A stretch of 64,000 bases of DNA, taken from NCBI GenBank assembly GCA_047495785.1, contig JBLDXI010000004.1, positions 682,001 through 746,000 of the forward strand. The letters run 5' to 3'. This stretch comes from Lepidodermella squamata (taxonomy: Eukaryota; Animalia; Gastrotricha). A program made the position numbers and the translations under genes. Shown here one piece after another: positions 13,596 through 37,182 of this stretch. Within the stretch, counting starts at the first letter, position 1, and each line of letters starts with the position of its first letter. Below the pieces are notes generated by a model. It had not been told where the DNA came from. It saw only the letters and a program-made list of their open reading frames with translations, and did not search any database.

Positions 13596-16500
13596 CATAC
13601 GGGCGCCGCCGTTCACAAAGTCGAAGGAAAAAAGATCCCATGGGTCGAGCATTGTTCCTCTATATCACCGCGTAATAGTGAGCGTAACATGCTTGAGTTT
13701 ATTTTCGCCGGGCGTGAAGAAATTTTCTCTAAGTCAGAATATCAGAATTTCGGGAGATTGCGCAAAATTGTGACTGCGCATAAGTCCGCTATTCTGCTAC
13801 CGCCGACAGTTTCCGCTGGTTGCGATGCGCGTCGTGAAATTTGCGCAAAATATGCGACTTTCCGTTTATAAATCTCTGATTTCGTTCACATTTTGATTCT
13901 CATTATTTAATTACCCAACTTATGATGCAATTAAATTAAATTATGTCATTAAAAACTCAATTGTTGAAAATTATTTAATATACTTTCAAAAACTTGATGT
14001 AATTAATAATATTAATCGATATAATGAATGAAAAAATTGCATCAAAAAACGAAATGAATTTTTACGAAAAAAAATAAAAATTAGATAAAATATATCCGAT
14101 CATATTTTTAGAAATTATTTTTATTTTTTTTTACATTTTTGCGATATATGAAAAGTATTCGGCTAAAAAACTAAAAAAACGGATTTTTATTCTTTCTTTG
14201 CGGTAGTTTCGACACTTTCCATTTTAATTTAAATTTCCCGATGTTATGTTGACTGATGAACAGCGTCGATTTTCAGAGCCTGAGATTTCAGTCGGCGGCC
14301 GTTACCAATTTTCAAAATTTGTTCAGCAACATTATACGGGTTTCATGTACTTGCTGTATTTTTCTTGTTCAAAAATGCTCCTGTGTGAAGATATCATTTA
14401 GTGATCAAATAATATTTTACTTCGGTATGAATTTTTCACGGCAATGTTATCGAGTTATCAAGAGATTTATCAACATCCTGTTATATTTTTTCCAGGTTCA
14501 AATATCAACAGAAAAATTGCACCGCAGTGGAGTGGCACGAATTTCATTACAAATAGAGAACTTTCAGGAATTTATTGGTTTTGTGTTTTTAAACGCTGCC
14601 ATCTTTGCCGCGGACTCGAATTGGTTCTTGCCAGCAGCATGAGTAGCAGAAAGTCGCTAGTTTTGATTTTCGTTCAATTTTTCAGATGGCCGAGGCGACA
14701 GGTGACTGTCTGAAAAAAATTACTGAAAAAAATTGGATGGAATTTTTTGGCAGAGGATAATTCTTACGGATTGGCGATGGAATGATCCGAATGACAGCGA
14801 TGAGCCAAAAATCCTATGAATGATCCCATCCCTGCGAGATCGAAATAAATCGCCCTAACATTTGCTTTCGGCAGTAATTTCCTGCCATCAGCCGAGGGTG
14901 TTCTATGCTGATTTCTTCGCCGGAGATGGGCGATCAATTTGGTGCCTGGCTGGCGAAATTTACACGAATGTTCTCATTAATTGTTTGCGTGAATGACTTG
15001 AAATGTGAAATTTTTTCCTTACGCATTATTCAGAGCTGTTATTCTGCGCGAGACAGGCGAAAAAACGTAGAATGAATTAATATAATGAGCAATCTTTGCG
15101 GTGGAAAATTATTATCAGAAGGCTGTGAAAACAAGGCTGAAGTTGTCTTTAATTTTTCACAATGATAATAGCGCGCGCAGGGTGTTTTATTTATCGTATA
15201 CCTGCGGCTTAAAAGTGTGATATCCGAAAAAATTTGCCATTCAACGCGATCTCTCGCGTTAGTTATTAAAATTCAAAATATTTCGTAATGTGACTAAAAT
15301 CATCTGACATGACGATATCAATTTTTCTCGATTTTCCCCCGAGTTCGATTTCTTCCGTAGGGGCAAACCCCTTTTATGCACCCTATTTTGCCCCTTGAAC
15401 CGGCAGAATTTTACGGTGAAAGATTCATGGCGATGCGAGTAGTCTCTTTTTTACTGTAATTTTTTGAAAATATGAAAAACCAAGTCGCCAGGTTTCAGTC
15501 AATTTTGGTTGTCGGATGAAAAAACACATCGGTCGGATGTAAAAAGTTTTCCCCGCGCGCAAATTTTTGCGAGGTTGATAAATGGAGCAGAAAAAAATGG
15601 GGAAATCCCGCCCCCTGGAGGAAGAAATTTATTACTAGCCGAAAATGTATATATCCATCTCTAATAAATTTGCCGGAGATCAAAAAAGCGCTATACTGTT
15701 GAGAGCATGGTTTCGGTGAAATTTTGTTGCTGTTTCGAGCGGGGCGAGGCTTTGAACAGGCCAAAAAAAATGGAAATCATTTAAACTGATGAACTAATGA
15801 TGGATGAAAAGTGGCAACATTTTCAAATACCTGATATGCAGCTGTTAGGGATGGAAGGAGAAGAAAAAACATCGAACTTTATGTATTAGCCGATATAATT
15901 CGACCGATAAAAATCGATGTTTAGGCGCGGTACTAGGTTCCTGGCAGTATTAAGTTTCCCCATATTACCAGCCCGGAAAAAAATAGATTTGGGTATGAAT
16001 GGAGATCGCGCCTGGAGAACACATGAAAAATAGTGTTTTCATTGCTACGGCACAGTTACTAAATATTGGGGGAAAAGCCCGAATTTCTTAGGAAAATAAG
16101 AGGAAAATGAGTGACAATTTTTTTGAATTGAACTAGAACTTGTTGTTCGCAAAGGGTGTTCACGTTACGGAACAACTAGCACTTTAAATGCGAGTTTTTC
16201 CGCAGCGTGATAGAGTGAGTGAAGAATGTGTACAAAATACGGAAAAATACTGCCCGAAAAGAATGTAAAATGAGAGACAAAGTCTAATCGTTACGGCACC
16301 CTCGCAATAACAGGCTTTTTAGGTGACGTCATAGGCATGTGGAACGATTATTGTGATTTGTTGTATAATCTGGACACGTAATGAGGCGATCTTGGCTTTA
16401 TTATGGGTGGTTATTTTTAGAAAAAAATCCGATTTGCCGGTGTGGCGAAAAATGACGAAAAAGCGAAACGAGCCCCGGTCCATTTACGTAGATTCGAAAA

Positions 16501-17031
16501 TAATCAACTAAATTACTATCTGTTTTTCGCCTGGTTGTCATTACTGCTTTTTTATCCGAATCTTAAATAAGGATCATCCTAAATTATTCCAGTCTCGCAA
16601 AAGTTGAGGGAAAAATTACATGAATTGTCTGCCAATTTAAAAAAAAACTCGACAATAATACTTGCGATTCACAACAGTACAAACTGTATACGAGGTCGAA
16701 ATATCAGTAATCAATTCCCCTAATAATATCAAATAAAGCCGAATAACTCGCAAGGGAATTTAAAATTTTAAAATTTTAAATTAAAAAAATCACGCCTATA
16801 TACAAGATTGCATTTGCGCTGCGAAAAATTTTCAATTTCATGACGCTTTCTTTCATTAGTTGTATATTTTAATGAAACACGTGGTATCATAAAACTATGG
16901 TACATAAGTAACTGATTGTTTGTGGCCCTAGATAGCACTTGAATATCTTGAAAATCGGATTGCTGTTTCTTTATAACGCCTTTATAATAACTAAATGCAT
17001 TGTGTTTCAAGTAGTAAGTAGCACTTTGAAC

Positions 17032-17302
17032 CGCGCGCTGATTGGTCAATTTATTGTTGCTATGACTCCGGGATGAAACAATTTAGTCGTGCAATCCACT
17101 AATAAATTATTTTCTATTTATGCAAAAAATGACCTTGCCACACCCTCTGCACGGTTTCCATTGACCACGAGCGTAAACCCCATAATAATCGTAGCAATTT
17201 ACTGCGGCAAAAAACACTTGTTGCAAAAAATTCAATGGATCGCACAACCAACATGTTTCATCCGGGAGTCATAGCAACGATCGATTGACCAATCAGCGCG
17301 CG
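17032..17302. promoter_or_regulatory. Imperfect palindrome with outward-facing CCAAT-GCGCG motifs; possible divergent promoter
   Basis: cgcgcgctgattggtcaat..gctatgactccgggatgaaaca vs tgtttcatccgggagtcatagc..attgaccaatcagcgcgcg. Confidence 0.45.
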
Positions 17303-17323
17303 CCCAGAAATTCTACTATTTAG

Positions 17324-18012
17324 CTCAAGCACAATGTGTCAAACAAAAATTCTCGCCAAAAGAAGGAAGAATTCGCCAACACTCGTCTACCTCAGATCAC
17401 ATCTCAAGGCCGAATGATAGCTTTTAAGCTAGAGTATAACCATCAGCTGACTTTTGGACAGGTAAATATATTTTCAAAGGGCTATTTTGCGATATTTATT
17501 TATATCAAATGGGGGGAAAAGGGGAAAGGCTATTCAATTTTGACAAGATTTTTTATTCGCTATTAAGATTGTATTCATTTTTCCTTAACATATTATTATG
17601 TCAAAAATTATAGGAATGCGATGTGTATAATTTCGATTGCGAAGACGCGCCAACTGTTCCCACGAAAGTTGTCCAGCACGAGCATGTGGCGGAGCTGACC
17701 GAGGCTCACAAGGATCGCCTGCACAAGCAGGTGCGTTGCATCCCCTGCTATGACCGGCTAAGGCTCGATCTTGGCTTCTCTGCAGAGGAGGCGGGCAAAA
17801 AATGTCGCAAGGCGACGCAGCGGTGCGTCACTTGTCCCGGAAGGCCGGGCATTTGCCGCCAATGCTGGCCGTACATCGAAAATCACGGCGGGGTGAGTGG
17901 GCCAGCGGAACCGGGGCCAGCGGAGTCAGGAGAACCAGTCCAACCAGTGGACAAGATGGAAGAAGATCGCGGAATTTCCTTGGAGCGACTTTTTGCCTTA
18001 TGCGACGATTAA
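17324..18012 (+). CDS. Spliced gene (start uncertain) encoding a piggyBac-type C-terminal cysteine-rich domain
   Basis: Exon ..RMIAFKLEYNHQLTFGQ|gtaaat, then tag|ECDVY..H..RCIPCY..G..A.KK..RCVTC..PGICRQCW...H; no DDD core nearby. Confidence 0.6.
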
Positions 18013-19174
18013 TTCTTGTTATAATTTATTGCGCTATATTATTATTATTATTATGTGATGATTAGGCCCAAAAAAGCAAAAAAATCAAATGCAGAATAGT
18101 TTCACCTTGAGTTAACAATTCTAACTTAGTACGGCAGATATTCGGCAAGAAATTCCAGTTTAAACCTCAGATTTTTATGCAAATTCAAGCCATATAAAAT
18201 GAAGAAAAATTATACTAGTTTGCTGATGCTTAGGACTTATAAATTACCTGTTCGCCGCTTTGAACGAAATAAATAATAAAAATCTTATCATCGCCTAAGA
18301 AAAAAAGTCGTTCTAAATAATCCCGCGATCTTCTTCCTTGTTATGGTTTGGTGATAAAAACAAAAATCGTTGAGCGAATTGGCCTGAATTAATGTTGCAA
18401 AAAATAAATGTGCCTAATCGAAGGTATAAGCCCAAAATCTAACGTATTCAATCACTGAAAATAATTTGGTGAAACTTGTGGAGAAAAATATATCGACAAC
18501 AAGTGAGAGGAAATATTAAACAATTAAAATAATTTTAATTTGAAAATACTAAACAATTTAAAAATAATTTTGGAGACAGTGATAGTAAGAGTTATCAAAA
18601 TTGCGAAATTGTACGTTGATATAGGGAACCCCCAGCTCTAGTTCGAAAACAAGGAGAAACCCCGGCTTTAAAATCTTCCTAGTTCGTTGTTTTTCAGCAT
18701 GCAAAATTCAGATTATTCTACAAAAATTTCAATTTCTTCAATTTAATAGCACGTGATTGAAACGTGAAAAAGCGCGCCGTTATAAGTGCAAGAGAACAGC
18801 AAGAGAGGCTAGGTATAAATTTCTTAACGCCAAGAAAATGTGACATATTCAATTAAAGGATTTTTTATATTAAAAAATTAAACGCCGTTGCGGGTTCCCT
18901 GTAACGTGAGATTCGTTGTTATTCCCCTGCGTTAAATAAATTTGGTACTTTTTCTTATCATGTGTCTCGAACTGGTGGTGCTGGTAGTAGCTGTTTTCAA
19001 ATTACAGAGCTCTTAGCGTTGCGCAATATAGGCTCGTCCTTTGTGGCTGATGTTACGTGTTTAGTGGAGGCAGAGGAATTTTAATATTTTATCTATTTTT
19101 GGCGTCCTAATTTTCACCATGATATTTGCTGCCTAAAATCGACGCGGCTCCCGCAACGTTCATGGCGTTCTCAA

Positions 19175-19441
19175 AGAGTTCACATTGTTCTCAGACTTCG
19201 ATTACGCCGTCGCCTTCGCTTGTCCCATTTTCCGCTGATTTTTCAATCCTAGAAATCTTAAAATTCCACGAAGTGGCTTTCTCTCGCGGAAGAGTTCACA
19301 TTGTTCTTGGACTTCGATTACGCCGGCATTATGCGTCCTAATTTTCGTCCGATTCCGTGGAAATCGTAAAAATTTTCAACTCGACTGCAGCCTGCATGGA
19401 AATCTGAAAAGAGGTCACATTGTTCTAGTCGGTGATTACGT
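19175..19441. repeat. Three degenerate ~115-bp tandem units
   Basis: aagagttcacattgttct..cttcgattacg recurs at ~19175, ~19290 and ~19409. Confidence 0.65.
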
Positions 19442-19692
19442 GCATATCTCTATCGTCGTTTTTAGACTAGCGGAGGGTTACGGAGGGGTTCGTTAATGCC
19501 AGCAGTTGCCATCTCCTTTTTTGAGGCCCTGCTAAGACAAATTTCGATTACGCAACTGAGCGAGTTTAAAACTTGGAATTTTCATTTTTCATGTTTTGAC
19601 ATCAAGCAATGTAAAACTTATACATTCATTTTCCACGTCAATTCTTATTTCCTATTTTTTTCATAATTGGTCACACCGATTTTACCGTTGGA

Positions 19693-21070
19693 ATGGAATC
19701 TACCTCCAAATGGAATTTTCGCGAAGAAAGTCTCTTAATTGACGAGCTAAAATCTCAGCAAGTTTCGGCGGCTACGATAGGAGCAGAGCTCGTGCAATTC
19801 GATTTGAAGTCGATTACGTCCATACTCAACGATGCTGGTAGCGCTAAAACGAGAGAGCAAGTGGAAAGAAAAGTTAATTGGTTGAAGGAAGAATATAAGA
19901 GAGAAGAGGCGAGAATGAAGGCGACTGGAGAAGAAGCCTCGACAATGAGGAATTACGAGCGCCTGAAAGATATCTGGGGTAAATCGCCCGCCTGCCTCCC
20001 ACCCAAGATTCGGCGTGACTCCGGAGTTATAAATGTTGATCCAGATCTGGAAATCAAAGAGGAATTGGTTGATCCGCCGAGTTTACCCGAGCCACCGTTC
20101 AAGCGTGGGAGATCGCTTTCCGGCGGAGGAACTTCAAAGCGGCAAACGTTGGAAGTCGCGACAGCCACGGCCGGCTCAAATGTCAGTCTTACAGCTGCCG
20201 CGAAATCGACTGCGTCGACTTCTACGGCAAGCCGCGACGTTCCAGCTAGGCCGCGCTTAAAAACGAGGAAAGACTACCTCAAGTCCCAAATCGCGGAGGA
20301 GCAAGTAATTTGTAAGGAAATGCTCGAAATTGAACGCGAAAGTGTTCGTGAAAAACAAAACCGTTTCAAGTTGGAGCAAGCTAAAATTGAGCAGGAGGAG
20401 CGCCGGATTAAAATTGAAGAAGAAAGGTATAATTTTTGAATACAAAAATTGAAATTTTTTCAAATACATAAACATTCAACATTTATTTTATATAGAATTT
20501 TTATGAAAACCGAGTTGTTTTTTTGAATATTATTCAGAAAATTCGGCTTGATTTTAATAATTTTTCAGAGTTTTTTTTAATTAAAAGTGAACGCAAAAAA
20601 TAGACGCTATCTATTAAATTCGATTAAAATTAAATTCGATTAAATTATTAAATTAAATTCGTAAAAATTCGATAAATTAAAAAAATGGCCGATGAAATAA
20701 TTGATGATCACACGGAAATGATTTTTGTATACTATGCAGGTTACGGCAAAACAACGAGATGATGCGGCAGCAAATGGAGCTGAATCGACAGCAGCTTCAG
20801 CTCAGCCAAATGCAAGCCGCCGCTTTACTTCGCATGCAGATTCCAGCTCAACAATACGCACCGCCTCCGCCACCACCAGCCGAACCACAACCGCGGCCAC
20901 CTGGCCCCGTAGTCTTGAATCCGACCGGGTTGTTTGCTCCGAACCCGACCGGGCCCTTTGCTGTAAATCAGCCGACCGGAACATTCGCCCCGAATCCGAA
21001 TATCCCTTCCTCTTTAAATCCGGGTTTCTTTCAGCCATTACCTCCGAATTTTCCTCAGTGGCGTCAATGA
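19693..21070 (+). CDS. Harbinger Myb/SANT-like DNA-binding protein (exons 19693-20426, 20740-21070)
   Basis: W..EE..LI ... KTREQV..K..WLKEEYK trihelix pattern; coiled coil; in-frame GT-AG intron; Pro/Gln-rich tail. Confidence 0.85.
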
Positions 21071-21278
21071 AGAAATTCGAAAATTTCAACTGCGCTTGAC
21101 TATCAAAAATTTCATTTTAAATATTTCCCTCTTCTTGATACATAATACGCTTTAATTCGATAGAAGCTGAAAAAATTCATTGCTATAACCATTGAATTTA
21201 AGGTCAAATAAAGCCAAATAAGTAAGAATGCAAGAATTGGATACTTTTATTCATGTCGAAAATCTTCATTTTCAATTT

Positions 21279-22694
21279 TCATTGGTGTCCCATGATATCA
21301 AGAAAATGACGAGAAAACGCATCTCTAACACGACGGCCTCGCTCGTGAAATAGCCCCTCCAGCTGTCGTAGAGCCGGGTTACCTGGCGGCATTGGAATCA
21401 TGATCGGCTGTACACCAACGATTTGTTGCGCCCATTGCTCAAAGAAGGGTTGATTCGATCTTTGGCAATAGTTGTGTAGCGTGGTTGTAGCTGCGACCAA
21501 GTCGGCCTGAAATTCGACTGACATAGCATTCACGACCAGAACTCTCTGCCAGCGACCCTTCCACCATCCTATAACCTGTTCGTCCCACCAACGTGCTGCT
21601 TTATGGCTGTTGTTGTAAAAACGCAAATTCGGATTCGCCTCGACCTCAGCTTCCGAATAAGGAGTTAATAACCACGGCAATTGAGGGTAAGCCCTGTCTC
21701 CAAGGACCGCAATAGGGACTTCTTCCCCGGAGACAATCGAGCCAAAATCAGGGAAAAGGTCACAGCCTTGGCGTTCCGCTCGGATGAACAAGGATGACCA
21801 GGTCAGCATTCGAGCGTCATGAACAGAGCCAGCCGAGCCCGCGTAGACATCCAGAAAGCAACCGTCATGTCCAGCCAAAAGCTACATATCAATTATAGCT
21901 TATTAATTTTCAAATATAATAAGCTATAATTACCCTCCTCTTCCTCTTCAGTAAAATTCTTCTATATTTTTTTTCATTTTAAAAAAATTTCTCACTGTCA
22001 ATTAGTGACTATAAAAATGCATAAAAATCTATGTAAAACGGAGACAAATTTCAACCTGAACTGCGATTGAATAATTTTGCTTCCGATCGAAATAATCGGC
22101 AGGATTTTCGACAGGACCGTTAATTGCGACATGTGAGCCGTCGATTGCGCCGATACAGCCCGGAAAATTCGTACGATTTTGAAACCCTTCGATTGCCCTG
22201 GCAAGTTCGGCTGCATTTGAGGGCAATTTAACCAGTTGATGAAATAGGTGAGCTATAATCGAGCGGCAAAATTCGTGAACTGTTAAGCACAATGTAGCAG
22301 TCGACATCCCGAATAATTCACCGACGGTTCGCATTTCACCATGTGTGGCAAGGAACCACAAAGCTGCTCCGACCCGGTGCCAAACAGGAAACGCCGGCCG
22401 AAAAATTGTATCCTCCCGATACAAGTCATTGTATACAACCTCAACCAGATGATTATAGGCCCCTCGATTCATTCTAATGTTAGATATCATCTCCTCATCG
22501 GTGAAATTTAAAAAAATTTCATTAGCATAAGTTCGGCTCCTTGCTCGCGTCCAAAACCGTCGACTCACGATTGATGAAAATTCAAGTACTAACCGGCGTC
22601 TCCTATTCAAACTGAGTCTAAACATTATTTTTCTCAAAAAACGCCTCATTTTTGCAAAGAAACAGCGCCAAATTTCATAGTGTGAAAAATACAT
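21279..22694 (-). CDS. Harbinger DDE transposase (exons ~22694-22056, 21881-21279)
   Basis: GAIDGSHV, YSIAVQ|LL, GSVHDARML, LGDRAYP..WLLTPY, EQVIGWWKGRW; 174-nt intron keeps frame. Confidence 0.92.
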
Positions 22695-25114
22695 AAAAAC
22701 TTTATTTTTTCAAAGGCTCAGTTGCATAATCAAAATGTGTCTTAACGGAGCCTAAATTAAGAGTGTAGCAACCGATGGCGTTAACGAACGCCTCCGTACC
22801 CCTCCGTCGTGTAAAAACGACGTATATTTAGCGGCCGATTACGTCTCGTCAAATTTCATCCTGCTTTTATGCGTTGAAATATTTAGGCTTTTATTGTCTG
22901 CATGCTGTCTTGTTTCTCTCCCACTCTTCCTCTCTCTCTCTCTCTCTCCGAAGAATATTTCCACGAATTTTATTTCTTTAGAGAAGTTTAATAATTAATT
23001 TCAACAAAAATTTACAAGGCGCGAATCACCAAATGTATATAGGTAACTATGTATAAACGAGGCTGGGAATGCGGGAGAAATTAAGCGGAAATCAGAGGGA
23101 ATATTTGAGCAATTTTAGTAAAATAGCTATTAAAATTACACGCCCTAATAATATTTAAAGACAACAACAATATCACCCCAGTCATTATTCCCAGTCTTCA
23201 GACCTCGCCAGCGTAGCTTGATTGGAAAAATGCGGCTAATCTTTCGCGGCCATAACGAAAATTCAGCTTCTGAAACATTTATCAGATTGAAGAAAGCCTT
23301 TCTTTCCATCTCGAACGATTTCGCCAACCGATGATGGGGTCTAAGGAACAAAAGGCATCGCGAAAAAATGATTAGTTCCATATATAGGCAATATAGGCAA
23401 ATATAGGCTCATTCTGAGGCCATATTTGAGGCCAGTAATTTTTTTAAATTATTTTTAACAATTTAGGGTTTTAATTAAAATTTAAACATGTTTTCATTTA
23501 TTTCAATTTTTCTAAAAAACAGAAAAAATACCTGGGGTTTATGTCGTGAAAATTTGCGAAGCGGCATGGCACAGAAACACGCCCTGCCTTCAGGTCCGCG
23601 CCTTCTGATTTAGTCGCCGGTTTACTTAGGATCGACGCTATTCGTAGGGCTATTTGATTAATTACAGAATAAATAGGTCCACGTGCTACGGTTGGTAAAT
23701 TGGGCGGCCGGGTGTTTTTACGAAGTGCGCGAATGGCCTCTTTCATTTCACCATCGCCATAGTGCGTGGTGCCGAAAAATTGAGGGGAAGGACAGGGTCT
23801 CGGGCGTAAACTATGTTGGTTTATAACCATGGAGTTGAAAAAAATGTATAAAAATCGCAACAAACTTTCAAGTTTTGCAAAATATTAGTTTGGCTAGTTC
23901 AGTTGAGTTAATCGGCGTCAGACTTTCATGCCATTTATATAACCAGCGATTACAAGTCTTGGTGACACGTGCGTGGCAACAACACGTAGTTATGATGGCA
24001 ATTCCTGTAATCAGCCTATAAGAGCATCGCGCCCTAAATTCGCCCACTTCATGAGGTTTTCCCCACTTTGCCAACAATTATATTTTGCCCAATAATTCAC
24101 ATTTTTAGTTTTGAACCGATTTTTCTGCCGAATTATGGCCGAAATTTGGACACCAAGTGCTTTACAGCAGTTTTTTGCTCACAGTGGGTGGCCGAATTTA
24201 CGAGATGGCCGAAATCAGGGTTGGATAGAGTTTTTGAAGTAGTTATTCTAGCAACAAATCCTATACTTTAATGAGTTACCGTCATTAATTCTTTTTTTGA
24301 GGTGGATTTATGAGGTGAAATCGAGTTAGAAATTGTGAATTTCTACAGTTGAGCATGGGAGACAAAAAGTAAGGAATATGTCACATCCTTTTTTATTTCA
24401 AAATTCATGAAAAATCGACGGAAATTGACATTGGGTGTTGATGAGAACAGAGAGAAATAGTTTTCGATAGGACTAGTTCCAGCTTGCATCATTTCAGTTT
24501 ACGGCATGTCGCTTCTTAAGGGTACATTCAGTGTAAGCCGGTTTGTAAGACCGCAGCCAGTTAGTCTCCAGGTCGACGCATCCGCGGAACAAATAGTTGA
24601 GCAGTATTCCATTCGGCGACCAAAATCTAGGAAAATGAAAATTTATTTCGTGAACAATTCAACATCGAATAATTTTAGGTTTTCCGTTCAAATCAAGTAT
24701 CAATTTGAAAAACAGTAAAGAAATGAAAAATCGAGACTTCCCAATAGTTATAACCCCCTATACTTTACGTCAATTAATTCTGAAAACTGATAAATCGCAA
24801 GCGTCTCGCTTAGCTGCAAAGCATTGTTAGACAATCAACGCTTAGTTTCGAATTAATCAGCTGTTTCTCAGCTGACGATCGGTTTCAGAACATCGCAATT
24901 TTCGCCAAGTACAATTAGCAAAGAATTTCTCATGTCCGATCGAAGGAAACGACGATCTCAGCCTCGCATGCCGAGGTTGAAGGGGAGTCTCCAAATTTGC
25001 AAATAAATCTTCCCAATCGCGTGATTATGATGGGCTTGCCCTCAGCCTGACAAGCGACAACATACAAATATCAGCCAGTACCTATAGCAGATACGTCATT
25101 TTGACCCTCTACAG

Positions 25115-25629
25115 GCAAATTTTCGCATGACAAGTTGAGTTTGCTCGATTTTAGGGCGATTCTCGCCGAAAATGACCAGTTTATTCCCGAATCGTCACGC
25201 TTGGTTGCACATCTCGCGGATTGCCTAGCTTTTGGCGCTTTACCAAGGTGTCCGAGTTGTAAAATCGGCCGCCTGATGCTCAGTGATGACGCGAAAGGTT
25301 ACCAATGCCAGGGTGATCGAAGCGGCGGCGAGCTATGCCGATGTTCCTTCGTAACCCGAAACCCGATGCGAATTCTCATGAAGATTCCAAACGATTATCA
25401 CTTCGAAGGAATAGAACTGTTCTCCAACTACAAGTTCGTTGACCGAAGTCGCATTTTCGAGGATAGCCCAGCCAGGGGCGTATCCAGGCGGTTGTTTTGG
25501 TTGTTAAACAACTACCAAAACGAATATCGAAAAACCCCTCTCAACAACAACTTCCCGATTTTCGATCTCATTCCTTATTTTAATGCAAATCCAAGGTTCA
25601 AATTATGCAAAAATAATGCAAAATCGTAA
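25115..25629 (+). CDS. Exon encoding a PADR1 (PARP1 Zn3-like) domain
   Basis: ILAENDQ..LADCLAFGALPRCPSC..GRL....YQCQG......CSFVTRNP matches the PARP1 pattern ADGMxFGAL..CxxC.G.L...Y.C.G....C; acceptor ctctacag. Confidence 0.8.
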
Positions 25630-27150
25630 CGTGAAAATAGCTAGGGACAATTTATTGAGCCATTTTCAGTTTGCTTTTTAAAGATTTCATACAGAAAAAT
25701 CCAGCTACATATAACATGCGATGCGCGGATGGGTTCAAATACCTACTGAAGTTGTCTGTTAAAATTGCCGAATACCCTTAAATATCGGACGCTAGGATTT
25801 GTATTTTTTTGAGATTTTATCTGTTTTGGAGAAAAGCAACTACCAAACCGAAATCCTGGCTACGCCCCTGAGCCCAGCTACGCCGAAGCGAGCGAGGACA
25901 AAGTTTCCAGCCTCGGACCCTGAGCTTGAAGGTAGGATCCCAAATTTCGGGTTTTTTCGGTTATTTTTTTCCGCATATTTCCTCACGAGAGAAAAGTAAT
26001 TAACGAAAAATTCCAATTTTTTCCGAATTTCGTTAATCACCAGTGAAAATGAGAAGAATGATGAATTATTACAATAATTACCTGATAAAAATTTCGTAGT
26101 CATGTTTGCGCGCCATGGATCTTCCTATCCCTCGGATTACCCGCTTCCTAGACGACCGATGCTCGTTGTAAACCCGTCGACTGTAATTCCGCCGCTTCGC
26201 TGGCGATGAAACGCTTGCAACTTCGTGCTGATCAGGTTGAAAACGGATTAAACACGTCGAGGCTGTCGGTTTCGAATTCGGCGAGTTCCGGCGGTTAGAC
26301 CAGAGTTAAATAGCGTGCTTTCGAGTGTCTCATTTTTCGAATAGTTGGTGACTCGCTATTACTTGACGTCGATACTGAAGTTGCGATAATTCTTAAATGC
26401 GGATCGAGTGTGAACGATGGGAACGATGGGAACACTGAGCCAGTCATTCGTGAAGGAATTCGAGCAAATGTCTCCTTTGTACCAGCTTGGCCATAATCGC
26501 CGCCAGCGACATCGGAATGAAGCCAGTTCAGATCGCTGTATTACGTTCGTTCATGCGAACTGCCTAAATACGGAAAAATAAATGAAAATTAGTCAAGTAG
26601 TTAATTTCTTTGATTATTATGATTAAAAAAGTGAACCATGTAAATTACGTAAAAACCTACACAGAAAAATTATTCTGTTTTTAATTTGGACTGTTCTCAG
26701 AAAAACACAAAAATAAAAAAATAGCATATCCGAAAATAAAAAAATTAAGAAAAAAAGAGAAAAAATGCTAGGGATGGTATACTATATTTTTTACGTATTT
26801 CGATGAGAAAAACTAGTGATATTGAAATTATGATTTTTACCGCCTCGCTCCCGTCGACATTTAAATTTTAAGCGGACAACAGGAAGGGCTGTGATCGCAC
26901 ATAAACAAATTTCCAATAAAAAAATTTTTATATATTACTCATTGACAGTATTAACCTCATCAGCTCAATAAAACCAACCTTGGCATTATCTTTTTCGCGA
27001 TGTTATCGGGCAAAAAATCGGGGGTAGTGCTGCGTCTGTCAACATCTACGTCACATGGAAAGCGTAGCCAATTTTTTTCGCTTGAAAATGGTTATTGAGG
27101 AAGCGCAAGGGCCAAAAAATCGAGCTTCGTAGAAACCCGAAACTCGAACT

Positions 27151-27226
27151 ACCCTAACCCTATCCTTATTCCTGAATCCTAACCAAACCTTAAACCTAAC
27201 CCTAACCCCTAACCCCAATTCCTAAT
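27151..27226 (+). repeat. Degenerate (CCCTAA)n telomere-like tract
   Basis: accctaaccctatcc...aacctaaccctaacccctaacccc. Confidence 0.7.
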
Positions 27227-28167
27227 CACAGTATGGCTAAAAATCACGATTTCATGAGAAAAAAATATGTATAAAGGTTATTTTTCCATTAAATATGAAA
27301 TTCGTAATTTTTAATCGACCAAATCATCAAAAAACTATGATTATGCAGTCATTTTTCGAAATTAACAGAAGTTCCTATAGAGCCATGTTATTTGGGAAAT
27401 TTTTGAGTTGGATTTTATTAGGCTCGCACCTTAGGGTGGCAAATCAAATCCTTTTCTTAAAAACACATCGCCACATCCAGAACTTTGCAATTCACATTTG
27501 AAATGAAAAAACTCTGCATCAATTCTTCCAAAATATAATCGCCTAAAAAATCATTTAAATCCGAACCCCCTTTTTGTATGAGGTACGCTTTTTAATCTCA
27601 GATGTAGGGCTCTATACTGAGCTCTATATCTAAATCCTATTAAATAACCCTAATTTATTCCTATATGTTCTGAAGCGATAGAACCGGGGCGATAAAATAA
27701 TTTGTTCGAAAACAACGATTAGACAATAAAAAACTATTATTACTACTTTTTATACGACTACTTGTATTATAGCCTTGAGAAAAATCTGGAAAACTGGTGA
27801 AAAGTTTCTGATGAGTTTCTTGGCAGAAACGAAACGCAATCTCAGCGCAGCCCGAAAACCGACTCATTTCGAAAGATTAAATATTGAAAATCCAATCGCT
27901 AAAATTAAGAAAAAATCTGTCAATAATTTAGTGCTTTTTATCGACCAAATTTTTTTTCAAAATTAATCCTCCTTAATAAGCTGTTCTGAGATTGCGTCAA
28001 ACTTGCCATCACCAAGTTTTGCAGCTAAAATGACTATATTTTTGTTAGCCAATGCGCAAATGCCGTTTTCCTAAAAATGACCATAAATAAGTGGCGTCGA
28101 GCAAGCATAGTTTACTAAAATTGCAGTGCGCATCATTTAATGACAGAATTTAGAGAATAGCGTAGCC

Positions 28168-28498
28168 CAGAGTTGTCCACGGGTCGAAAAATTGAGGCCC
28201 GACCGAGCCCGTCAGTAAATATCTCCAAACCCGGCCCGGCCCGTAGAAGAAAAGTCACACGAAATTAGTATTCCTTCTTCCTTTTCGATGCTCAAAAACT
28301 TCAAAGAGACGTCATTTTTACTCGAAGTTGGCATTATATTGATGTTTTGCTACGGGAATAACTTAAAATCTTACTGTCAAATTTACTGAAAGCAATTGCA
28401 AAGAAATCCTAGAAGACGGGTTTTGAAAACCAGAGGATTGGAAAACCCATACCCGCCCAAACCCGGCCCGGGTTAAACCCGGCCCGTGGACAACTCTG
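28168..28498. mobile_element. hAT-type MITE
   Basis: TIR cagagttgtccacggg / cccgtggacaactctg; perfect 8-bp TSD gcgtagcc. Confidence 0.92.
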
Positions 28499-29092
28499 GC
28501 GTAGCCAACCCTTTTAACGATGGGCAGAACAAACTAAAATCAAAAGCCAGTGTAAAAGCCACTAATGAGGATAGTCGGATCGTTTTTAGTTGGATTGGAA
28601 TGCGACATGAATATTTTAAATGCGAAATAGGAGCATATCGAAGAGTTGAAAGAATCACGTGTCCGCTAATGACCTAATTAAGGGATGCGCATTATTAGAT
28701 CATTTGCAACCACCCTGAAAACCGAATTTTTTTTGTATTCGCACTCTGAATTTTGCTGAAATTTCGATTATTGAAAATAAAGAAAAATCTACTTAAAAAT
28801 CTAAGAAGTGAATAAAGTCGAAAAAGCCTATCCGTCACGAAGTCGTTTTTTCTCCCGATAATTTTGGTACTCGCGTAATATTGCTTATTATTGAAAAAAA
28901 TATTCCTTGCCCTTGGAAGCGAATGAAATCTTAAACCATTAAAATCTTTGAAAATGGGCTGAATTTCGATAAATAATAATTCTTAACTCATCAAGGCTTG
29001 ATTACCTCATTATTCTCCAGATTCTTCAGCCTTTCAGCATTTACTATCTCTGCATCGCACGATTTGCTTAGAATTGATTAATTTCGTACCTA

Positions 29093-29494
29093 ATGGCTCA
29101 AAAGCGGCCTCTTGGTGCTGAATCGGGCTTGGAATCGAGCTCGGAAGAGCCAATAGCTGAGTCCCGTTTCCCTCTCGGTAGAATCCCCAAGGTGGCGAGG
29201 AGCACATCAGGGGCCCAGCTCAACTACTTTTCAGTGAAGCCAAGTAATCCACCCAGGAAGAATCCGATCGACCGTAACAAGCCAGGTTGCAGTGGAACAG
29301 CGCCGCCAGGAACTTCGGCTGAAGTTCCGCCACCTAGGGCCAACAATGCGAAGACGTCAAGGCGACCGGTCTCGCCAGTTGCTTCTTTAACAGAGCCAGA
29401 CTTGCCGCGTGATATGGCTCGATCAAACGCCCTGCAGAGATCTTTCCTGGAAGAAGAAGAAACGACATCATTTGATGACAACGTAATTTTTTGA
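29093..29494 (+). CDS. Low-complexity ORF; candidate first exon of the transposase or a separate cargo gene
   Basis: ATG start, GC-richer than flanks, Pro/Ser-rich, possible donor gtaatt at ~29483. Confidence 0.45.
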   Translation: MAQKRPLGAESGLESSSEEPIAESRFPLGRIPKVARSTSGAQLNYFSVKPSNPPRKNPIDRNKPGCSGTAPPGTSAEVPPPRANNAKTSRRPVSPVASLTEPDLPRDMARSNALQRSFLEEEETTSFDDNVIF

Positions 29495-30299
29495 ACTAAT
29501 TCATTTAAGCCTAAAAAATATTTACTTCACAAATATTTCTAAATTTCATGATTTTTAATGAAACGGTTTTCCCCTTGAAATATTTCATCTATCATTAAAC
29601 GCCGCAATACAGTAAAATCTGAATTTTCATCCGAGGTGGGAGAATGCAATTCTTCATTTTTCCAAAAAAATATGCGAGTTTTGCTATTTACACTCCAGTT
29701 TTCGCAATTTATAACGCATTTGGCCAACTTTCGTCGCAAATTTATCCGATCTGAAATTATAAAATTTCACAACGGAACTTGACGTGGATTTCAAATTAGG
29801 AATTTTTCAATTTTTTCGGCTTCCCTAAATCCTCCAGGGAACACCACTTTGCCCTTTTCAAATGGTGAGTATCCGTGGTCTAAAATATCTCAATTATCCG
29901 AATCGAAGCTGATTTTACAAATTTTAAGAACGTAATTTCCTCCATAGTTACTACGCGTGATGGTACTTCATGAAAATAAATCTGCATTACCCAGCCAGAT
30001 TTTTCAGGATTTTCGAAGAAGAGACGAGATTAGAATTGGAATGAATTTAAGGGTCCGACAGCGGGCGTAGCCAAAATTTTGATTACAACTTATTCCCCAT
30101 AGTTAATTAGAAAACGTGACGATAATTCGCAATGCGTTTGAAATCGTTATTGTTGCATCTAATAACTTATCATGGGCACAGTATTTCAAACGCCATTAGT
30201 CGCCTTTAGTCACATGACAGAAACAGTTGGATATATCTGATCCTAATAATGTAGAAATTAGGCAAAGTTTTCAGAGCGAATTTATCGATTTTTTTCATC

Positions 30300-30726
30300 A
30301 TGAGCAACCTCGAAGACGACGATCGCTATTCAACGGGAGATTCTGAATATGACAGCGACGAGTCCATGAGATTAAGGGCGAAAGCCAAGCGAAAAGCTGA
30401 AGAGTATGCCTTTTATCGCCGTTTGTCATGGCACAACTATAAACGCGAGAATCCTACATTAAGTAGCCACTTTGTTCCTAACAAACTGGGTATGAATTAG
30501 CTGAATAGCAGCGCTCCAAGTAAGAATTTTCACCTTATGCACTTTTCTTGCAGAAAGAAGCGCTTCGTGCATTGAGTTTATAGCCGATCGAACCGGAGAC
30601 TGGAATATGACGTGGTATATGCTTACTGAGCTAGGGAATATACCTGCGAAACGACGATATTCAGTCAATTTGGGAAAACACGAATTCAACTTCGGAGGTT
30701 CTTTTCGAAGAAAGGACTTCAATTGA
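30300..30726 (+). CDS. Small two-exon orphan gene (~120 aa)
   Basis: MSNLEDDDRYSTGDSEYDSD..; donor G|gtatga joins in frame to cttgcag|..ERSASCIEFIADRTGDWNMTWY..*. Confidence 0.4.
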
Positions 30727-32108
30727 GCTTAAGTGCTGAACCTATCTGATTTTGCCCTCAATATTTTGATCAACAGCTAATTCACCTTATTTAATTTCAT
30801 GCTTTGATGCCATTCAAGAGGTTTCAGAAATAAATTAATTCGCCTCCGTGTAATATCGTTAGCCATGGTACAGCAAGTATTATGGCACGCTTGTAAATAG
30901 TTCAATAAAATTTCGAATAAGTCTTTTTTGCAACCATGAATTTTCCGTCTGACTTTTTTCTGTGTGATCCGTATGTCATGTTAGCAATTCCAGTCGAAAA
31001 AACACAACTAGCGTGAGTGGGGATATTTTGGAAAAAACCCATGTTTTTCGAGGATTAAAATGAATTTGAATTTGTTTTTTTTCGTCCTCCTTAAGGCATG
31101 AAATGTGATGATAAAGAATATTTCGAGGATTAAAAATCAGTCTTTAATTAGAAATCGATGATTTTAGGTTTGAGTAAGGTAATTTCAGATTGACCTGTAA
31201 TGTTTGTGAATTTTACCTGATTTTTGGCGATTGCAAAAACAATTAAGAAAAGTTGAACAATGAGCGGGTGATTTTTTGCTTAATAAAAACCATAAAAAAT
31301 CAGCGCGCAAGTTTCTTACTCGGGTATCAAGTACCCTGAAACCCTCCAATTTAGCTTGGAATTAAAAATTTAAGCTTGTAATGTATCACGACCACGATGA
31401 TACGCGATGAAGCTTCTACAGCGTGTCCACAAGTTACGCAACTATTTTTTACTTGGCATCTTTTCTACAAAATCAAACTCATTTTATTAAATTAAACCAA
31501 CTGAGAGAATATTCAATTTTTTATACGCGATTTAACCGAAGAAATCAAAAATTTACCGAAGAAAACCCGGAAACCCCCGATGGTAACTGGTTCGGAAATT
31601 TTCGGTATTTTACCCGTTTGGAAATAATATCTCCGGACTTTTTTAATCCCATTAACAACTGAAATAATTCATTGAAGTTCTCCTAATTTTTTCAAATTTC
31701 TATACATTTTTTGGTCATACTGTGTGACTTCATCTATTATTACTGAGTTTCTGAACCCTTAGCCGTGTATTTTCTAAGCATGCGTTACTTATGGGACACG
31801 CTGTAATTAACAAATGAAATTCGATGTATGTCAAATTGTGGATAAAAAGTTTTCTAAGGCCAGTTTTGCTTTTAATCTTGTTTTGAACACCCTATACCCC
31901 AACTCGAAATTATTTACAGTGTAAAATTAAAAAAATAGTAATTACGCTGTTTGAGAGCACTAAGTAAGACACATTTAGACTCGCCGAGCAAAAATAATGC
32001 GATTTCCTGAGTAAGATGTCATTTTTAATTAAAATTTAACAAATATCAACGAATTTTGTGAATTAGAAATTTCTCCAGCAATTTTCTTAAATCCTCCAAT
32101 TTTTTCAG

Positions 32109-35100
32109 GCGACTTCTTTCAACATATTTGCAAGTCCAAAGCAGGTAAAATTGGGTCGACCTGCTACCAAGCGGTACCAGGAACACGAACCGTCTGCTCG
32201 CTGCATGAGGCGAAAGCGTCGCCTAGAAGATGGTTTGCAGTTCACCACAGACGATTTTGCCAATCGAGTTATGTGTTACCACGACAAAGCTCCGGTAGTA
32301 GGAGCCTCAGTAGAATTGTGGTTTCCTGGTCCCCAAGGAACCTACGACAAGGTGGCAAGGCGCTATGGCGCAGCTGCAGAGGAAGAAGACCCCGTGGAGG
32401 CAGCCAGAAAGTTCGACAAATTATAATTATAATTCCGATATTTTATCTCTATCCTTGTAGGCTCATACGTCTTTCAACCTCTCATGTCATGAGTGGAAGG
32501 GCGACAGAAAAAATAGCAAGCGCCCATAAAGTGGTGCGCCGAGCAGTGTTGCGAGAAGAAAAATCAAGGCAAAGCAACATGTTCGATTTAACGACCAAAA
32601 AAAACACCGCTACTTACTGCCGAGGTAAATTATGAAAATAGGATAACTAACTCAATACATTAATTTCGATCAATAACACTACGATTTTGCGCGATTTTTT
32701 CCGGAAAAAAATAATTCCAAAGATTATTCTATACCGAAATTAATTCTATAAATTTATTTTCCCTTGAGAAAAGGTAATACGATAAATCAAGAAGGTTGGG
32801 CAATCTCTTCTCATTTTCCTGAAAAAAAATCAATTTTAAATGGCTAAAATTTGTTAAAAACGCGGTAGGAACTCCACAGCCCATTGAAAATCTCACATAT
32901 TTTGAATGTCATAAACGATAATTTCGGCAAAATCATAGCGACTAATGGACTTACATTTTCAGCAAATTCTCTGATTTCAGGATGAAGAGGATAACGGCGA
33001 TTGTGGTATCGAGGGTGAGTCGGTAGAAAGCGCTTTGAGAAATGAGTCGTATGAACTGCGGCGAAACGATGAGGGAAGCGAGGCTGAAGAAATTGATGTG
33101 AAGACTGAGCGTAAGAAAGGCGGCTGCTCTCGAGATGTACGACAGATGTTGTCAACATTAATCACTGTTCACGAATTAAAGCCAGAGCATCCAGTCAAAA
33201 TTCGACTTGCTCTAGACGGTACGCCTGGCCGAACAGAAGGCACGCAAGAAATGGTTCGATTCACCATCTGCCTGCTGGATAAGAAAAATCGGCCAGATCT
33301 TGCATCCGAGCATGCGATAGCGACGTTCTTCGACACAGAATGTCACGCATCAATTGCCCATTATTTCTCGGAAGCGTTCTCGCAGGTTCGATTCTCCATT
33401 ATGATTATTTAAAATAATCCTAAAATATGCGAAAAATATATTATAGAGGAAGGTCTTCAATTCAAGGCGTGCTTTTTCCTGTGTTTTAAACATGAAAATG
33501 CGCAACTATTCATTAATTTTGCGAAAAAAAATTGAAATGGAATCAAACGTAGTATAACCAAATAATTCTGAAATTAAATAGTAAAATAATAGCTTTGTCA
33601 TCAACAATCAACAAACAAAAATCAACAAATCTTCCTGGGGGAATGGTATCATTTAACGATATTTTCAATTATACGAAATCATGAATTTTGCGAATTTTTA
33701 AAAAACACGGGAAAACTTGAAATTAAAATAAATTAATAGAACGAAAAATCGGAATAAATAAAACTAAGTAAATAAAAAAAATGCCCATCTGCAATACGGC
33801 AATATCTGCACCATCTCGCCGGATAAAATACCCATCGTCATCACCCATCACTATAAAACTAAACCAATAAAACTAAACCTCCATACAATATAAGGCAAAC
33901 TCTATTCTGAATTCCCTTTGTTTAACATCGTGTCCCATAAGTAAGTGATACAAAAAACAGAGAAATACGATTATGCTAGCTAAAATGAGTGCCGAATTAT
34001 TTTCACAAGGCCATAAAAATCTTTCGAAAAATTAAAAATGACAAGAGAATGCATACTGAGATTTAAACCCATGGAAATTTGGTTCAGCCTGGTAAAATAC
34101 AGCCGATTACAGTAGGTTACATCAGGGTTTTACGTGATTTTCCCGATAAATTTCTACTTCTTCGCTAAAGCCGTGCGTAATGAAAATGGAAAATTATCCC
34201 GGCAGGATTATTTTCAAATAATTATTAGAATTTTCTGCAAATAATTGCAAACTTAAAATTTTTTGCCAATTTATGCCCAATTTTTGCCCAAATTAAGCGT
34301 GTTAAAAGTCAACTAATACAGGTCCCAAAAAAGTATTACTAATTTTTGAAAAATTAATAAAATCACGTGTTTCAGATAAATCATCTGCAAGACCATGGAC
34401 ATGATTTTGGCGGCAACCACTACGACATCGAGGCCTACTGGAGTGCCGATGTTATGGCTGTCATTAAAGTCTTTGGAGCCGGTAGTACAAATGGCGATCA
34501 TTTTTGCCCTCTTTGTACCCAGCGAAGAAGCTCTAAAAATGACGAAGACGTTAGTGACCGCCTATTCCATCGACTGGCCGTCATGGATCAAATCATGCAG
34601 AATCCCGAATGCAACCGTAAAGGGCAAAAATATATGCCTCTTCTACGGATCCGTCCTGATCACATCCTGCCCGATCCTCTGCATATGCTCGCCCGTCTCA
34701 CTGAGACTTTGATTAAATTGGTTCGTAAATAATAAATTTTCGTGAATTTCTCATGTATCAAAAATATATGAAATTTAAGACGCTTCAGCGGCTACTCGAA
34801 CTCGGCCTGACTACGGATGCTGATCGCATCAAGAATGGGCTTGAGAGAAGGGGTGGCGGTCGGCTGAAAATTGACTACACCGAGAAATCGGCGAGCCAGA
34901 AGAAGGCTTTCAAGGTCACAGTCAAGGTGACGGGCCACACCATCGCTACGAAGGCCTTCAGCGAATTCGATTTTAAACTGGCCGATATAACTGTCGATGA
35001 CAGCTCAGCCAGGCGCCAACTTCTGGAGAAGCGAACTGTGGCGACTTTAAAGTCGATGATCGCCGAAGCCCAAAGCAGTCACGCCGTACTGAGCCGAAAA

Positions 35101-35663
35101 AGGGCCAAAAAATCAGACTATGTGGAGGCTGCCATGGACTTGGGTCTGCGCTGCAATGAGGATGACAGCTCCGCCGATGACGCTGAAAACGCCCAAGTGG
35201 TTCTGAAATCCCTTGACAATGTCATCGCCCTTGGAAAATTACTTTTCAAAGCGGTGACTAATCAAGTGAAGACATTGCCACCTGCCAGCGAATTTCGACG
35301 CTTTGAAGCGATGCTCTTCGACATGCGGAAGAAGCATACTATTTACTCGCATAGTAAGTATCACCCGCTATTTTTGACGATTAAGTAATTTATTTCTTTG
35401 CAGTGATGGGTTCGCACGTGCACAGCCATCTGGCTGCTGGCCTTGACCTCGTGGCATTGGGCACTTCTTCTATTGAGCGCGGCCATCGAGTACTCAAGCG
35501 CGTCCGCGAGGCAATGTCGACGCAGCAAACCGGCGTTGTCACTGCGATCGACGTGATGAAATACGAGAACAGGCGCCTATGCGCATTCATTTACGACAAA
35601 AAGTTTAATATTATTGTCCACGAAAGTGCCGCAGGAAGAATTATTGAACTGCAAAAACGCTGA
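32109..35663 (+). CDS. RAG1/Transib/Chapaev-like DDE transposase, multi-exon (core exons 32981-33385, 34376-34720, 34780-35353, 35404-35663)
   Basis: VKIRLALDG (D1); YWSADVMAVIKVFG..FCPLC (D2 + CxxC); GQKYMPLL..PDPLH; IYSH|MMGSHV (HxxxxH); LGTSSIERGHRVLKR (E). Same order as the RAG1 core; core exons join in phase. Confidence 0.85.
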
Positions 35664-36859
35664 TTTAATCTTCTAGTTAGTCCTGAATTCGTAACTCTAG
35701 TGATAAATGAAAGTGTAATGTTGTAAATAAATAGATTGAAATGATTTTCGGCTGAAATTCGATGTGATCACAGTTGTGTTATTGAACTATGTAGCAAATG
35801 TTAGATGACGCCCTCGATTAATATCATTTTTTTCATCTAATATTTTCTACAAATCCTTCTCATCAATTATGGCGGAAATTCAGAAACTAATGTAGTCAAT
35901 CGTGTCGCATTTCAATTGACAATGCCTCCATGACTTCGTGTCTTACTAAGATGGCGTGAAATATTGAAACTCGGTCTGATTGTAGATATACTCTTTATAT
36001 AAACCTATCAATCTTGTAGCATCAACTTTGAAGCATATCAACTTGAGAATAGTGATAATTTGATATCACTTCAAAAAATATATTAACGCAGACCGGAATC
36101 ACTCGTCTTCTGATAAACCTAGATGGTAAATTCTCATCATGATTTACCCCACTTGAGTTGATGATACCAATTGATGAATTCGAAACGAATACAGTTATAG
36201 CAACTGGACTAGATACAGACAAACATTTCAATCAAAATCAACTCACTTAAATACTTATCGACTCACGACATGGTGGCAACCTGTTGCTTATCTTCATCAT
36301 TTATGTCCGCAGTCAATCGCTCAATTCTTCAATCCTCCGCCGTATTATTGAAAGAGGTGACGATGTTAACTCAGCAGCAGCATTCACACAGCAAATTCGA
36401 TCCGAATACCAGCAGAAGTAACGCCAAGATCATTTTCAAGTCAAAGCTTTCACTCAAACTGAGCAAGAGTTATCTGAGTAGGACATCTTCTAACTCAGAA
36501 AGTCGAAATTAAGCAAAACTGTTAACGCCGACACCTAGTTAACACAAGTAAAAGACATTTCATTTCATCATTTCACCACCGATATGGGCAGGAACTTCAA
36601 AATGTCCTTTCAAAGTGTTATGGAAACTTTAAACAGCCAAATGCCAGCTAAAACTTGCGTGCAGTCACGCAGCTCGCAAATCTCCCGCCACGGGTGAAGG
36701 ATTTAATTATAAGAAAATAATTTTTTTCCAACGAATACATTTTTTTTATAACAAATCAAATTCTTTTCCAAGAGCTAATTTTATTTTGTTTTGATTTACC
36801 GCAGCCACTATTAGTGATTTGAGCGAAAATTAATATGTGAACGGCGGCGCCCGTATGAA

Positions 36860-37182
36860 TGTTTCCGCGGCAAGGCGATTTCCGTCGCGATTTTCGACAG
36901 CAAAGCGGTCCGCCACGTCGGTATCAACCTGCACCTCGCCAGCAGTCACCAAGCCGATTTCCTGACCGTTTTCAGGAGCGCCCGCAGCAATTTCGCGGAC
37001 GACAGCGATCAGGTAATGATAATAATAACGAAGAGGGTTGTTGGCACTGCCACAAACCGGGACATTTTAGGCGAGATTGCCGGTCATATAGGCAGGACTT
37101 AGAGCGGAATAGTCGCCAGCCGCCTTACCAGGGAAAAGGGGGGCGGCCGGCCTCAAGGCGCCAAGGTCGGCCGAACTATTGA
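36860..37182 (+). pseudogene. gag: LTR-A gag C-terminus with CCHC knuckle
   Basis: CWHCHKPGHFRRDC; slippery G GGA AAA at 37131-37137 followed by a GC stem. Confidence 0.85.

Follow-up and report, generated by a model that had tools for sequence, protein, structure and literature searches.

A 23-kb transposon assigned by its motifs to the CMCT clade, with a predicted six-exon transposase and 2-bp target-site duplications, in the gastrotrich Lepidodermella squamata

Is the 23-kb block that interrupts the gag gene of a long terminal repeat (LTR) retroelement in Lepidodermella squamata a single mobile element and, if so, of what kind? The block lies in a stretch of 64,000 nucleotides (the window), which corresponds to C4:682001-746000 of a 121-Mb assembly in 151 contigs; C4 stands for contig JBLDXI010000004.1, other contigs are given in the same short form, and positions without a contig name are those of the window. 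A first-pass annotation of these letters had proposed a cargo-carrying DNA transposon with a RAG1-like transposase, representing a giant, gene-capturing lineage with an unusual end signature. The reading reached here, which we hold to be very probable, is that of a cut-and-paste element of the CMCT (CACTA/Mirage/Chapaev/Transib) clade, with a transposase of the DDE type (named for its catalytic residues D, D and E) encoded in six exons, an autonomous form of about 19-21 kb, and gene fragments acquired in the style of Pack-CACTA elements.

The limits of the element are sharp. Combining an inverted-repeat search with a genome search, we found two 22-nt terminal inverted repeats (TIRs) that are 100% complementary, the left one at 13596-13617 (+ strand, beginning CATACGGG) and the right one at 36836-36857 (- strand), enclosing 23,262 bp. 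Reading of the flanks shows the dinucleotide AA on both sides (13594-13595 and 36858-36859), a 2-bp target-site duplication (TSD), so that coordinates, complementarity and flanks all agree with the original description. Searched genome-wide with at most 2 mismatches, the TIR pattern gave 66 matches, against 0 for the reversed control pattern. Among 24 independent insertions with both ends present, 4 of them long or medium-sized and 20 resembling miniature inverted-repeat transposable elements (MITEs), 23 show an exact 2-bp TSD. As 12 different dinucleotides are used and about 1.5 matches would be expected by chance, a sequence-independent 2-bp TSD is established for this CATAC-ended family; the sole exception is compatible with a 3-bp CTA. 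The end signature CATAC..GTATG and the 2-bp TSD, first noted at this one locus, thus hold for further copies.

The two halves of the gag open reading frame (ORF), one starting at 12788 and the other at 36859-37182, share one reading phase if the element and a single AA are left out of the count, since 13595 is codon position 1 and 36860 codon position 2; in this sense of phase arithmetic, the gag frame is restored by removal of the element, as had been proposed. Genome-wide, no uninterrupted gag copy (that is, no empty site) was found, a 200-bp query from the left flank returning its own locus, the duplicate of that locus and a 74-bp match at 85%.

Does the whole block move together? The copy in the window (copy W, 23,262 bp, TSD AA) has two long counterparts, copy A (C4:599547-618565, 19,019 bp, opposite orientation, TSD AG) and copy D (C42:1627645-1648596, 20,952 bp, TSD TT). 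All three are collinear across about 18-19 kb at 97-99.6% identity, with different flanks and different TSDs. Because three independent sites hold the same interior in the same order, each with a 2-bp TSD of its own, the whole body transposes as a unit, as the first-pass annotation had supposed from a single copy. A fourth copy (copy C, C4:777777-792054, 14,278 bp) has the same flanks as W (99.7-99.9% identical over at least 1.5 kb on either side) and is therefore a duplicate of the entire locus and not a separate insertion. The duplicated segment, gag and transposon together, comprises 12096-38357 in the window and C4:776277-793554, 82 kb apart. Relative to W, copy C has lost 23964-27644 and 31075-36163, the transposase region included, and has gained a different, Harbinger-like insert of 3.6 kb.

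Shorter derivatives carry the same ends. A 5.9-kb element on C50 has in common with the family only about 130 bp and about 54 bp at its two ends, and the 20 MITE-like copies are mostly about 483 bp long, further lengths being 286 bp, 1.4 kb and 2.0 kb. In 17 MITEs of 453-485 bp, about 30 bp at each end are common with the element, and their mean pairwise identity is 93.8%.

The transposase gene was assembled by locating its exons through islands rich in guanine and cytosine (GC) and then reading the splice sites. All six exons are on the + strand: exon 1 at 32109-32410, with a probable ATG at 32205; exon 2 at 32461-32624; exon 3 at 32981-33385, with the first catalytic D in an ALDG motif; exon 4 at 34376-34720, with the second D, a C(2)C motif 19 residues further on and then an LH motif; exon 5 at 34789-35353, which holds the insertion domain; and exon 6 at 35404-35663, with H(4)H, then the catalytic E 20 residues past its second H, and the stop codon. 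The five introns are of GT..AG type and measure 50, 356, 990, 68 and 50 bp; introns of 50-68 bp with TTTCAG acceptors are the style of the host. Along the spliced protein the motifs run ALDG, SAD-x19-CPLC, DPLH and H-x4-H-x19-E (x18 in copy D). In copy D (exons at C42:1643799-1647400) the six joined exons stay open for 678 codons, which gives 646 amino acids (aa) from the first ATG, and no N-terminal 'Chapa' zinc finger was seen in this 646-aa model. The frame is open in D alone, being broken in A by a 4-nt deletion in exon 3 and in W by one extra nucleotide in exon 2, near 32595; this 1-nt frameshift renders the W transposase copy defective.

Comparison of the copies provides information on how the gene has evolved. 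Between D and W, 25 codon changes are synonymous and 6 non-synonymous, with a non-synonymous divergence (dN) of 0.0046 and a synonymous divergence (dS) of 0.058. Divergence is much greater in exon 6 of D (C42:1647144-1647400), where dS is 0.31 and dN 0.022, against a dS that elsewhere in the gene does not exceed 0.03, and this exon differs from W and A almost exclusively at third codon positions. The predominance of synonymous change indicates that the transposase gene is under purifying selection, and the far greater divergence of exon 6 looks like a tract of recombination or gene conversion from a diverged, still unsampled subfamily. A related gene occurs elsewhere: a Logan contig of run SRR21620664, from another organism, codes for a protein that is 35-51% identical across residues 252-643, and its gene keeps two of the intron positions together with their phases.

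To which transposases is this protein related? A search with exon 4 in 1.84 billion representative proteins returned 33 relatives, the best being 56% identical on a 95-aa fragment. The full-length relatives are uncharacterized proteins of about 650-860 aa from cnidarians, sponges, mussels, a tick and a glomeromycete (Nematostella, Dysidea, Mytilus, Rhipicephalus and Diversispora), and a profile search added further unannotated proteins of marine invertebrates. Among the 20 relatives whose source was looked up, none is from a nematode and none bears the name Mirage. The relatives of about 800 aa show no Pfam domain except a weak SAP and one weak RAG1 match (E 0.029), and their Pfam search gave no match to Transposase_21 or Plavaka. 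Their profile matches the spliced protein with 100 bits from the first D to LH, and full-length alignment with hhalign gives a probability of 99.5% (E 2e-21), with H(4)H and the E aligned. Compared with the PDB, the same profile matches RAG1L (6b40, E 6.4e-8) and RAG1 (E 5e-6), while a profile centred on exon 4 reaches only 0.08 against the RAG1 side. The language-model neighbours of the transposase belong to Plavaka, Transposase_21 and RAG1 clusters alike.

The CMCT clade, as delimited by Kojima (2025, PMC12730594), comprises EnSpm/CACTA, Mirage, Chapaev, Transib, Plavaka, ESTA, Lanisha and RAG1, and is defined by C(2)C and H(3-4)H located after the second D and before the E, CA..TG termini and a TSD of 2-5 bp (PMC12730594). 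The element presents the DDE residues with C(2)C and H(4)H, CATAC..GTATG ends and the 2-bp TSD, features that place it in this clade; within it, its ends read CAT instead of CAC and its protein finds no Pfam match. Judged by these motifs, the predicted transposase is distantly related to RAG1 as well as to the transposases of plant CACTA elements. The first-pass annotation had seen a spliced transposase with motifs in RAG1 order: motifs, order and profile matches to RAG1L and RAG1 stand, as does membership of the broad Transib/RAG/CMC group, to which the D-D-E, C(2)C, LH and H(4)H motifs also point. However, the likeness to RAG1 holds only at the level of the clade, since motifs, CA..TG ends and 2-5 bp TSDs are common to all of it, and the gene in the window is the frameshifted one.

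None of the named groups fits in full. Strict CACTA/EnSpm elements have CACTA or CACTG ends, a 3-bp TSD and a TNP2-type Transposase_21, whereas the present element has CATAC ends, 2 bp and no Transposase_21 match (E<=1) in the exons tested, and no convincing subterminal repeats of the En/Spm type were found in it. Mirage elements have a TSD of 2 bp. The family is like Mirage and animal EnSpm elements in this TSD, in its animal host, in its short TIRs and in cut-and-paste movement, a likeness at the level of description; its autonomous copy, on the other hand, is 19-21 kb long, against 3.6 kb for a related family in the same genome. Mirage itself, with animal EnSpm, is now placed under EnSpm in Repbase (PMC4455052). 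Chapaev and Chapaev3 are also animal elements and have in common the C(2)C, LH and H(4)H motifs that are their hallmarks (Zhang 2014, PMC4079192), but Chapaev ends are invariably CAC..GTG and its TSD is 3-4 bp (TWA in Chapaev3; PMC4079192), compared with CATAC..GTATG and any 2 bp here. Transib, ProtoRAG and RAG1 show D, D, C(2)C, LH, H(4)H and E in the same order and at the same spacing, while Transib and ProtoRAG differ in their 5-bp TSD and in termini resembling the CAC heptamer, which those of the element do not. ProtoRAG has, in addition, a convergent RAG2-like partner gene; a Pfam scan of all 146 ORFs of at least 50 aa gave only DDE_Tnp_4, PADR1, Myb_DNA-bind_4 and a borderline Cwf15 (E 0.0096), with no RAG2-like (kelch/PHD) partner. 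Plant Pack-CACTA and Tgm-Express elements (PMC6379663, PMC1947982, PMC8903248) are alike in having a large CACTA-clade body with several host-gene fragments; they are plant elements, mostly non-autonomous, with CACTA ends and a 3-bp TSD, whereas this one is from an animal and encodes its own transposase.

Related families in the same genome allow the large size to be put in context. Family K (C26:560596-564239, with copies on C34 and C11 and a further match on C31) is 3.6 kb long and has CATCTTAG ends, TIRs of about 44 bp that begin CATCTTAGTC, and TSDs AA, AA and TC. Its transposase exons are on one strand and a convergent ORF of 263 aa, rich in lysine and acidic residues, on the other; its main exon has a weak match to Transposase_21 (E 0.005, below the cutoff). 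As this related family measures just 3.6 kb, the lineage as a whole is not characterised by large size, and non-autonomous relatives sharing the ends of our element range from 0.48 to 5.9 kb; the earlier description of a giant lineage is thus to be narrowed to this one family. The closest transposase relative in the genome, here called Q, lies at about 167-170 kb on C4 (C4:166000-170000) and is 39%, 31% and 27% identical over three blocks. The boundaries of an element were not found at C4:166000-170000, and Q could be a domesticated or fused transposase copy; no kelch/RAG2-like or kleisin partner was found there or in the element. Just upstream of Q, on the same strand, is a SOCS-box ORF (E 2e-5). 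In Nematostella vectensis (OW051987.1), XP_048581436 lies within a 5.36-kb element whose perfect 22-bp TIRs begin CATGGCC; this protein is an uncharacterised, distant relative of the transposase, and its family has a C-terminal SAP domain and no Pfam model. At this single copy the flanks do not match, so no TSD was read.

What fills the remainder of the 23 kb? Two insertions are private to W: a high-copy MITE of 339 bp at 16998-17336 (ends CATTGTG..CACAATG, TSD TG) and a PIF/Harbinger element of 3.37 kb at 19454-22822 (DDE_Tnp_4 and Myb/SANT ORFs, TSD TAT), of which a second copy lies at C42:184218. Copy C lacks both and therefore serves as an empty-site control for both; without them 19.55 kb is left, in line with the 19.5 kb or so estimated at first. 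The 339-bp MITE has more than 40 copies in the genome, and its ends, CAT..ATG in outline, read CATTGTG..CACAATG, the heptamer of Transib and of recombination signal sequences in reverse orientation; its TSD is 2 bp (TG). Besides the transposase gene (about 3.6 kb with introns), the body shared by the long copies consists of old nested repeats, GC-rich exon-like islands that coincide with ORFs, and AT-rich DNA unmatched elsewhere in the genome. The repeats are a MITE-like one with 20-bp TIRs (28167-28499), present in W, A and D, and a dispersed one of about 390 bp (31417-31809, + strand) with many copies at 77-80%, a second, inverted copy of which (33925-34256, - strand) lies inside intron 3 of the transposase gene. 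Neither Rfam families nor tRNAs were found in the element.

The islands themselves resemble pieces of genes. A cysteine-rich one at 17614-18009 (+ strand, 132 codons, GC 0.58), present in all long copies, has paralogs at C1:4818987-4819209 (77%, partial) and in a tandem family on C42. The latter is a cluster of at least 6 genes (C42:2510191-2524530) encoding the cysteine-rich motif C-x2-C ... C-x2-C ... C-x2-C, of which the element has a fragment. The island at 23501-23884 (- strand, 128 codons) occurs only in copies of the element and has changed mostly at non-synonymous sites, and that at 29078-29491 (+ strand, 138 codons, GC 0.52) has a partial paralog at C3:1777112 (48%). At 25105-25626 (+ strand) lies the PADR1 zinc-ribbon fragment of a PARP paralog (Pfam E 2e-9), 80% identical in amino acids to a PARP-paralog exon at C31:36485-36853; it belongs to a segment of about 0.9 kb (25119-26053) private to W, in place of which A and D carry unrelated sequence. 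Finally, a candidate two-exon ORF of about 120 aa at 30300-30726 (+ strand) has exons at 30300-30489 and 30554-30726 separated by a 63-bp GT..AG intron; exon 1 does not differ among W, A and D, is 98% identical in C and has a paralog at C3:670432 (61%), whereas exon 2 does not differ between W and C, is 98% identical in A and D and has no paralog. Internal segments thus have partial paralogs on C1, C42, C3 and C31, a pattern that matches gene-fragment capture of the Pack-CACTA type. The islands have changed mainly at non-synonymous sites (for example, 1 synonymous change compared with 6-8 non-synonymous ones), the opposite of the transposase. The term 'gene-capturing' used at first is therefore apt for fragments with partial paralogs elsewhere, but not for whole genes: the islands lack purifying selection and RNA support, and the PADR1 piece is confined to W.

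The large body is probably not confined to this organism. Contigs from a DNA run under the same organism label cover the element. In a run that bears the label of a second organism, contigs of low depth align with unique parts of the body (27677-31790) at about 88-99% identity. In that run 7% of the 31-mers are shared, the expectation for about 92% identity over the whole stretch. The contig matches and this 31-mer share together suggest that the large body exists in the second organism too.

Could the 23 kb nevertheless be ordinary DNA that was caught, by accident or in a composite, between two MITE-like ends of opposite orientation? Such ends are abundant, as the 66 genome-wide matches attest, and derivatives with unrelated interiors exist (copy E), but the same ordered 18-19 kb recurs at C4:599547, C4:695596 and C42:1627645 with perfect TIRs and an own 2-bp TSD each, and this interior itself encodes a matching transposase; the TSDs and the collinear interior at three sites refute the chance or composite pairing, to which we give hardly any credence. 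A less remote alternative, improbable in our judgement, is that the element genuinely belongs to the Transib/RAG1 branch, as a sister of Transib, TransibSU or ProtoRAG with changed ends and a 2-bp stagger, and not to the CACTA/Mirage/Chapaev (CMC) side. RAG1L and RAG1 are indeed the only significant PDB matches of the relatives' profile, the one weak Pfam hit among the relatives that bears on the question is to RAG1, with none to Transposase_21 or Plavaka, and the D-x19-C(2)C and H(4)H-x19-E spacings agree with the aligned RAG1 residues. Against this, 23 of the 24 insertions have a TSD of 2 and not 5 bp, the ends read CATACGG in place of the CAC heptamer, no RAG2-like or kelch ORF appears among the ORFs of the element, and the exons tested match no Pfam RAG1 model. 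Moreover, solved Transib transposase chains are absent from the PDB matches, the in-genome relative K leans to Transposase_21, and H(4)H and LH are Chapaev hallmarks as well (PMC4079192).

Several observations weigh against the CMCT reading as formulated above, or complicate it. The place of the element inside the clade is judged from the ends, TSDs and motifs described for Mirage, Chapaev, EnSpm and Transib; no Pfam transposase model, RAG1 and Transposase_21 included, matched the exons tested at E<=1; and the run search found no RNA run containing the element, its splicing being read from the genomic letters. As for the body, about 15 kb maintained in three copies, and apparently in the second organism too, is not explained by random capture alone, and some of the cargo may be functional. 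The strongest form of this idea, that accessory genes akin to TnpA or RAG2L, such as the 120-aa ORF, are kept by selection and account for the large body, seems to us unlikely. In its favour, the ORF at 30300-30726 varies little or not at all among the copies (the 66 codons compared are the same in W, A and D), is cleanly spliced at GT..AG sites and is nearly identical in the second organism, where a contig matches 30349-30511 with 1 mismatch and neighbouring DNA and other pieces are at about 88-95%; an ORF at 26298-26540 (- strand) shows 4 synonymous and 0 non-synonymous changes, tiny counts as they are; and the body is collinear in the three independent copies. However, the batch scan yielded no convincing Pfam match beyond the borderline Cwf15, atlas searches with two cargo ORFs returned nothing usable, and RNA runs with the element are lacking. 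The small ORF, with a 61% paralog for one exon and none for the other, suggests a chimera, the remaining islands change with a non-synonymous bias, and all codon-change counts are very small.

Starting from the ends, TSD, copies, gene model, selection on the transposase and clade homology observed directly, the reading as a CMCT cut-and-paste element leads to the following proposal. The six-exon gene would encode a 646-aa DDE transposase with a C2-H2 zinc site, an enzyme expected to recognise the 22-bp GC-rich inverted ends and excise the whole element of 19-21 kb. Reinsertion would take place at a 2-bp staggered cut without sequence preference, leaving the 2-bp TSD. The W copy inserted into the gag region of the LTR retroelement and was afterwards duplicated, flanks included, 82 kb away; its Harbinger and its MITE came after that duplication. 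Being frameshifted, W could now presumably be mobilised only by enzyme supplied in trans from the intact copy on C42, and the MITEs of about 483 bp and the 5.9-kb derivative, which share just the ends, would likewise depend on enzyme in trans. The 15 kb or so of additional body consists for the most part of unique DNA without coding capacity, old nested MITEs and pieces of exon size with relatives among the host genes, not kept by selection, and the fragments would have been acquired as in Pack-CACTA elements.

As copy D combines an open transposase frame with perfect ends, the family, which is young, may still be active through this copy. It would then add a possibly active family to the clade from which RAG1 arose. 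The family stands out by its size (about 19-21 kb), its CAT ends, its non-specific 2-bp TSD and the absence of annotated relatives, whereas its mechanism and its carrying of fragments are of known kinds and require no new kind of system. We tentatively consider a broader proposal, for which the chances are somewhat better than for functional cargo while still well short of even: that the family, together with its in-genome relatives with CAT..ATG ends and non-specific 2-bp TSDs, forms an undescribed animal CMCT lineage between the CACTA-type and the Transib/RAG1-type elements, its body of about 20 kb, with at least one small conserved ORF, being maintained across species. The occurrence in one family of a RAG1-like zinc-site spacing and a Mirage-like 2-bp TSD could help to relate Transib/RAG to CACTA-type elements, and capture of gene fragments by a very large autonomous element, well known from plant CACTA, would extend to a compact animal genome.

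Two minor observations concern other traces of the family. At C4:277606-280744 there is an older, degraded copy of the transposase half of the element, with 84-97% identity. Furthermore, two MITE insertions are each present twice with identical, reverse-complementary flanks (C3:2905369 and C4:154992; C4:2933459 and C4:2941306), and these pairs are segmental (inverted) duplications or uncollapsed haplotigs.

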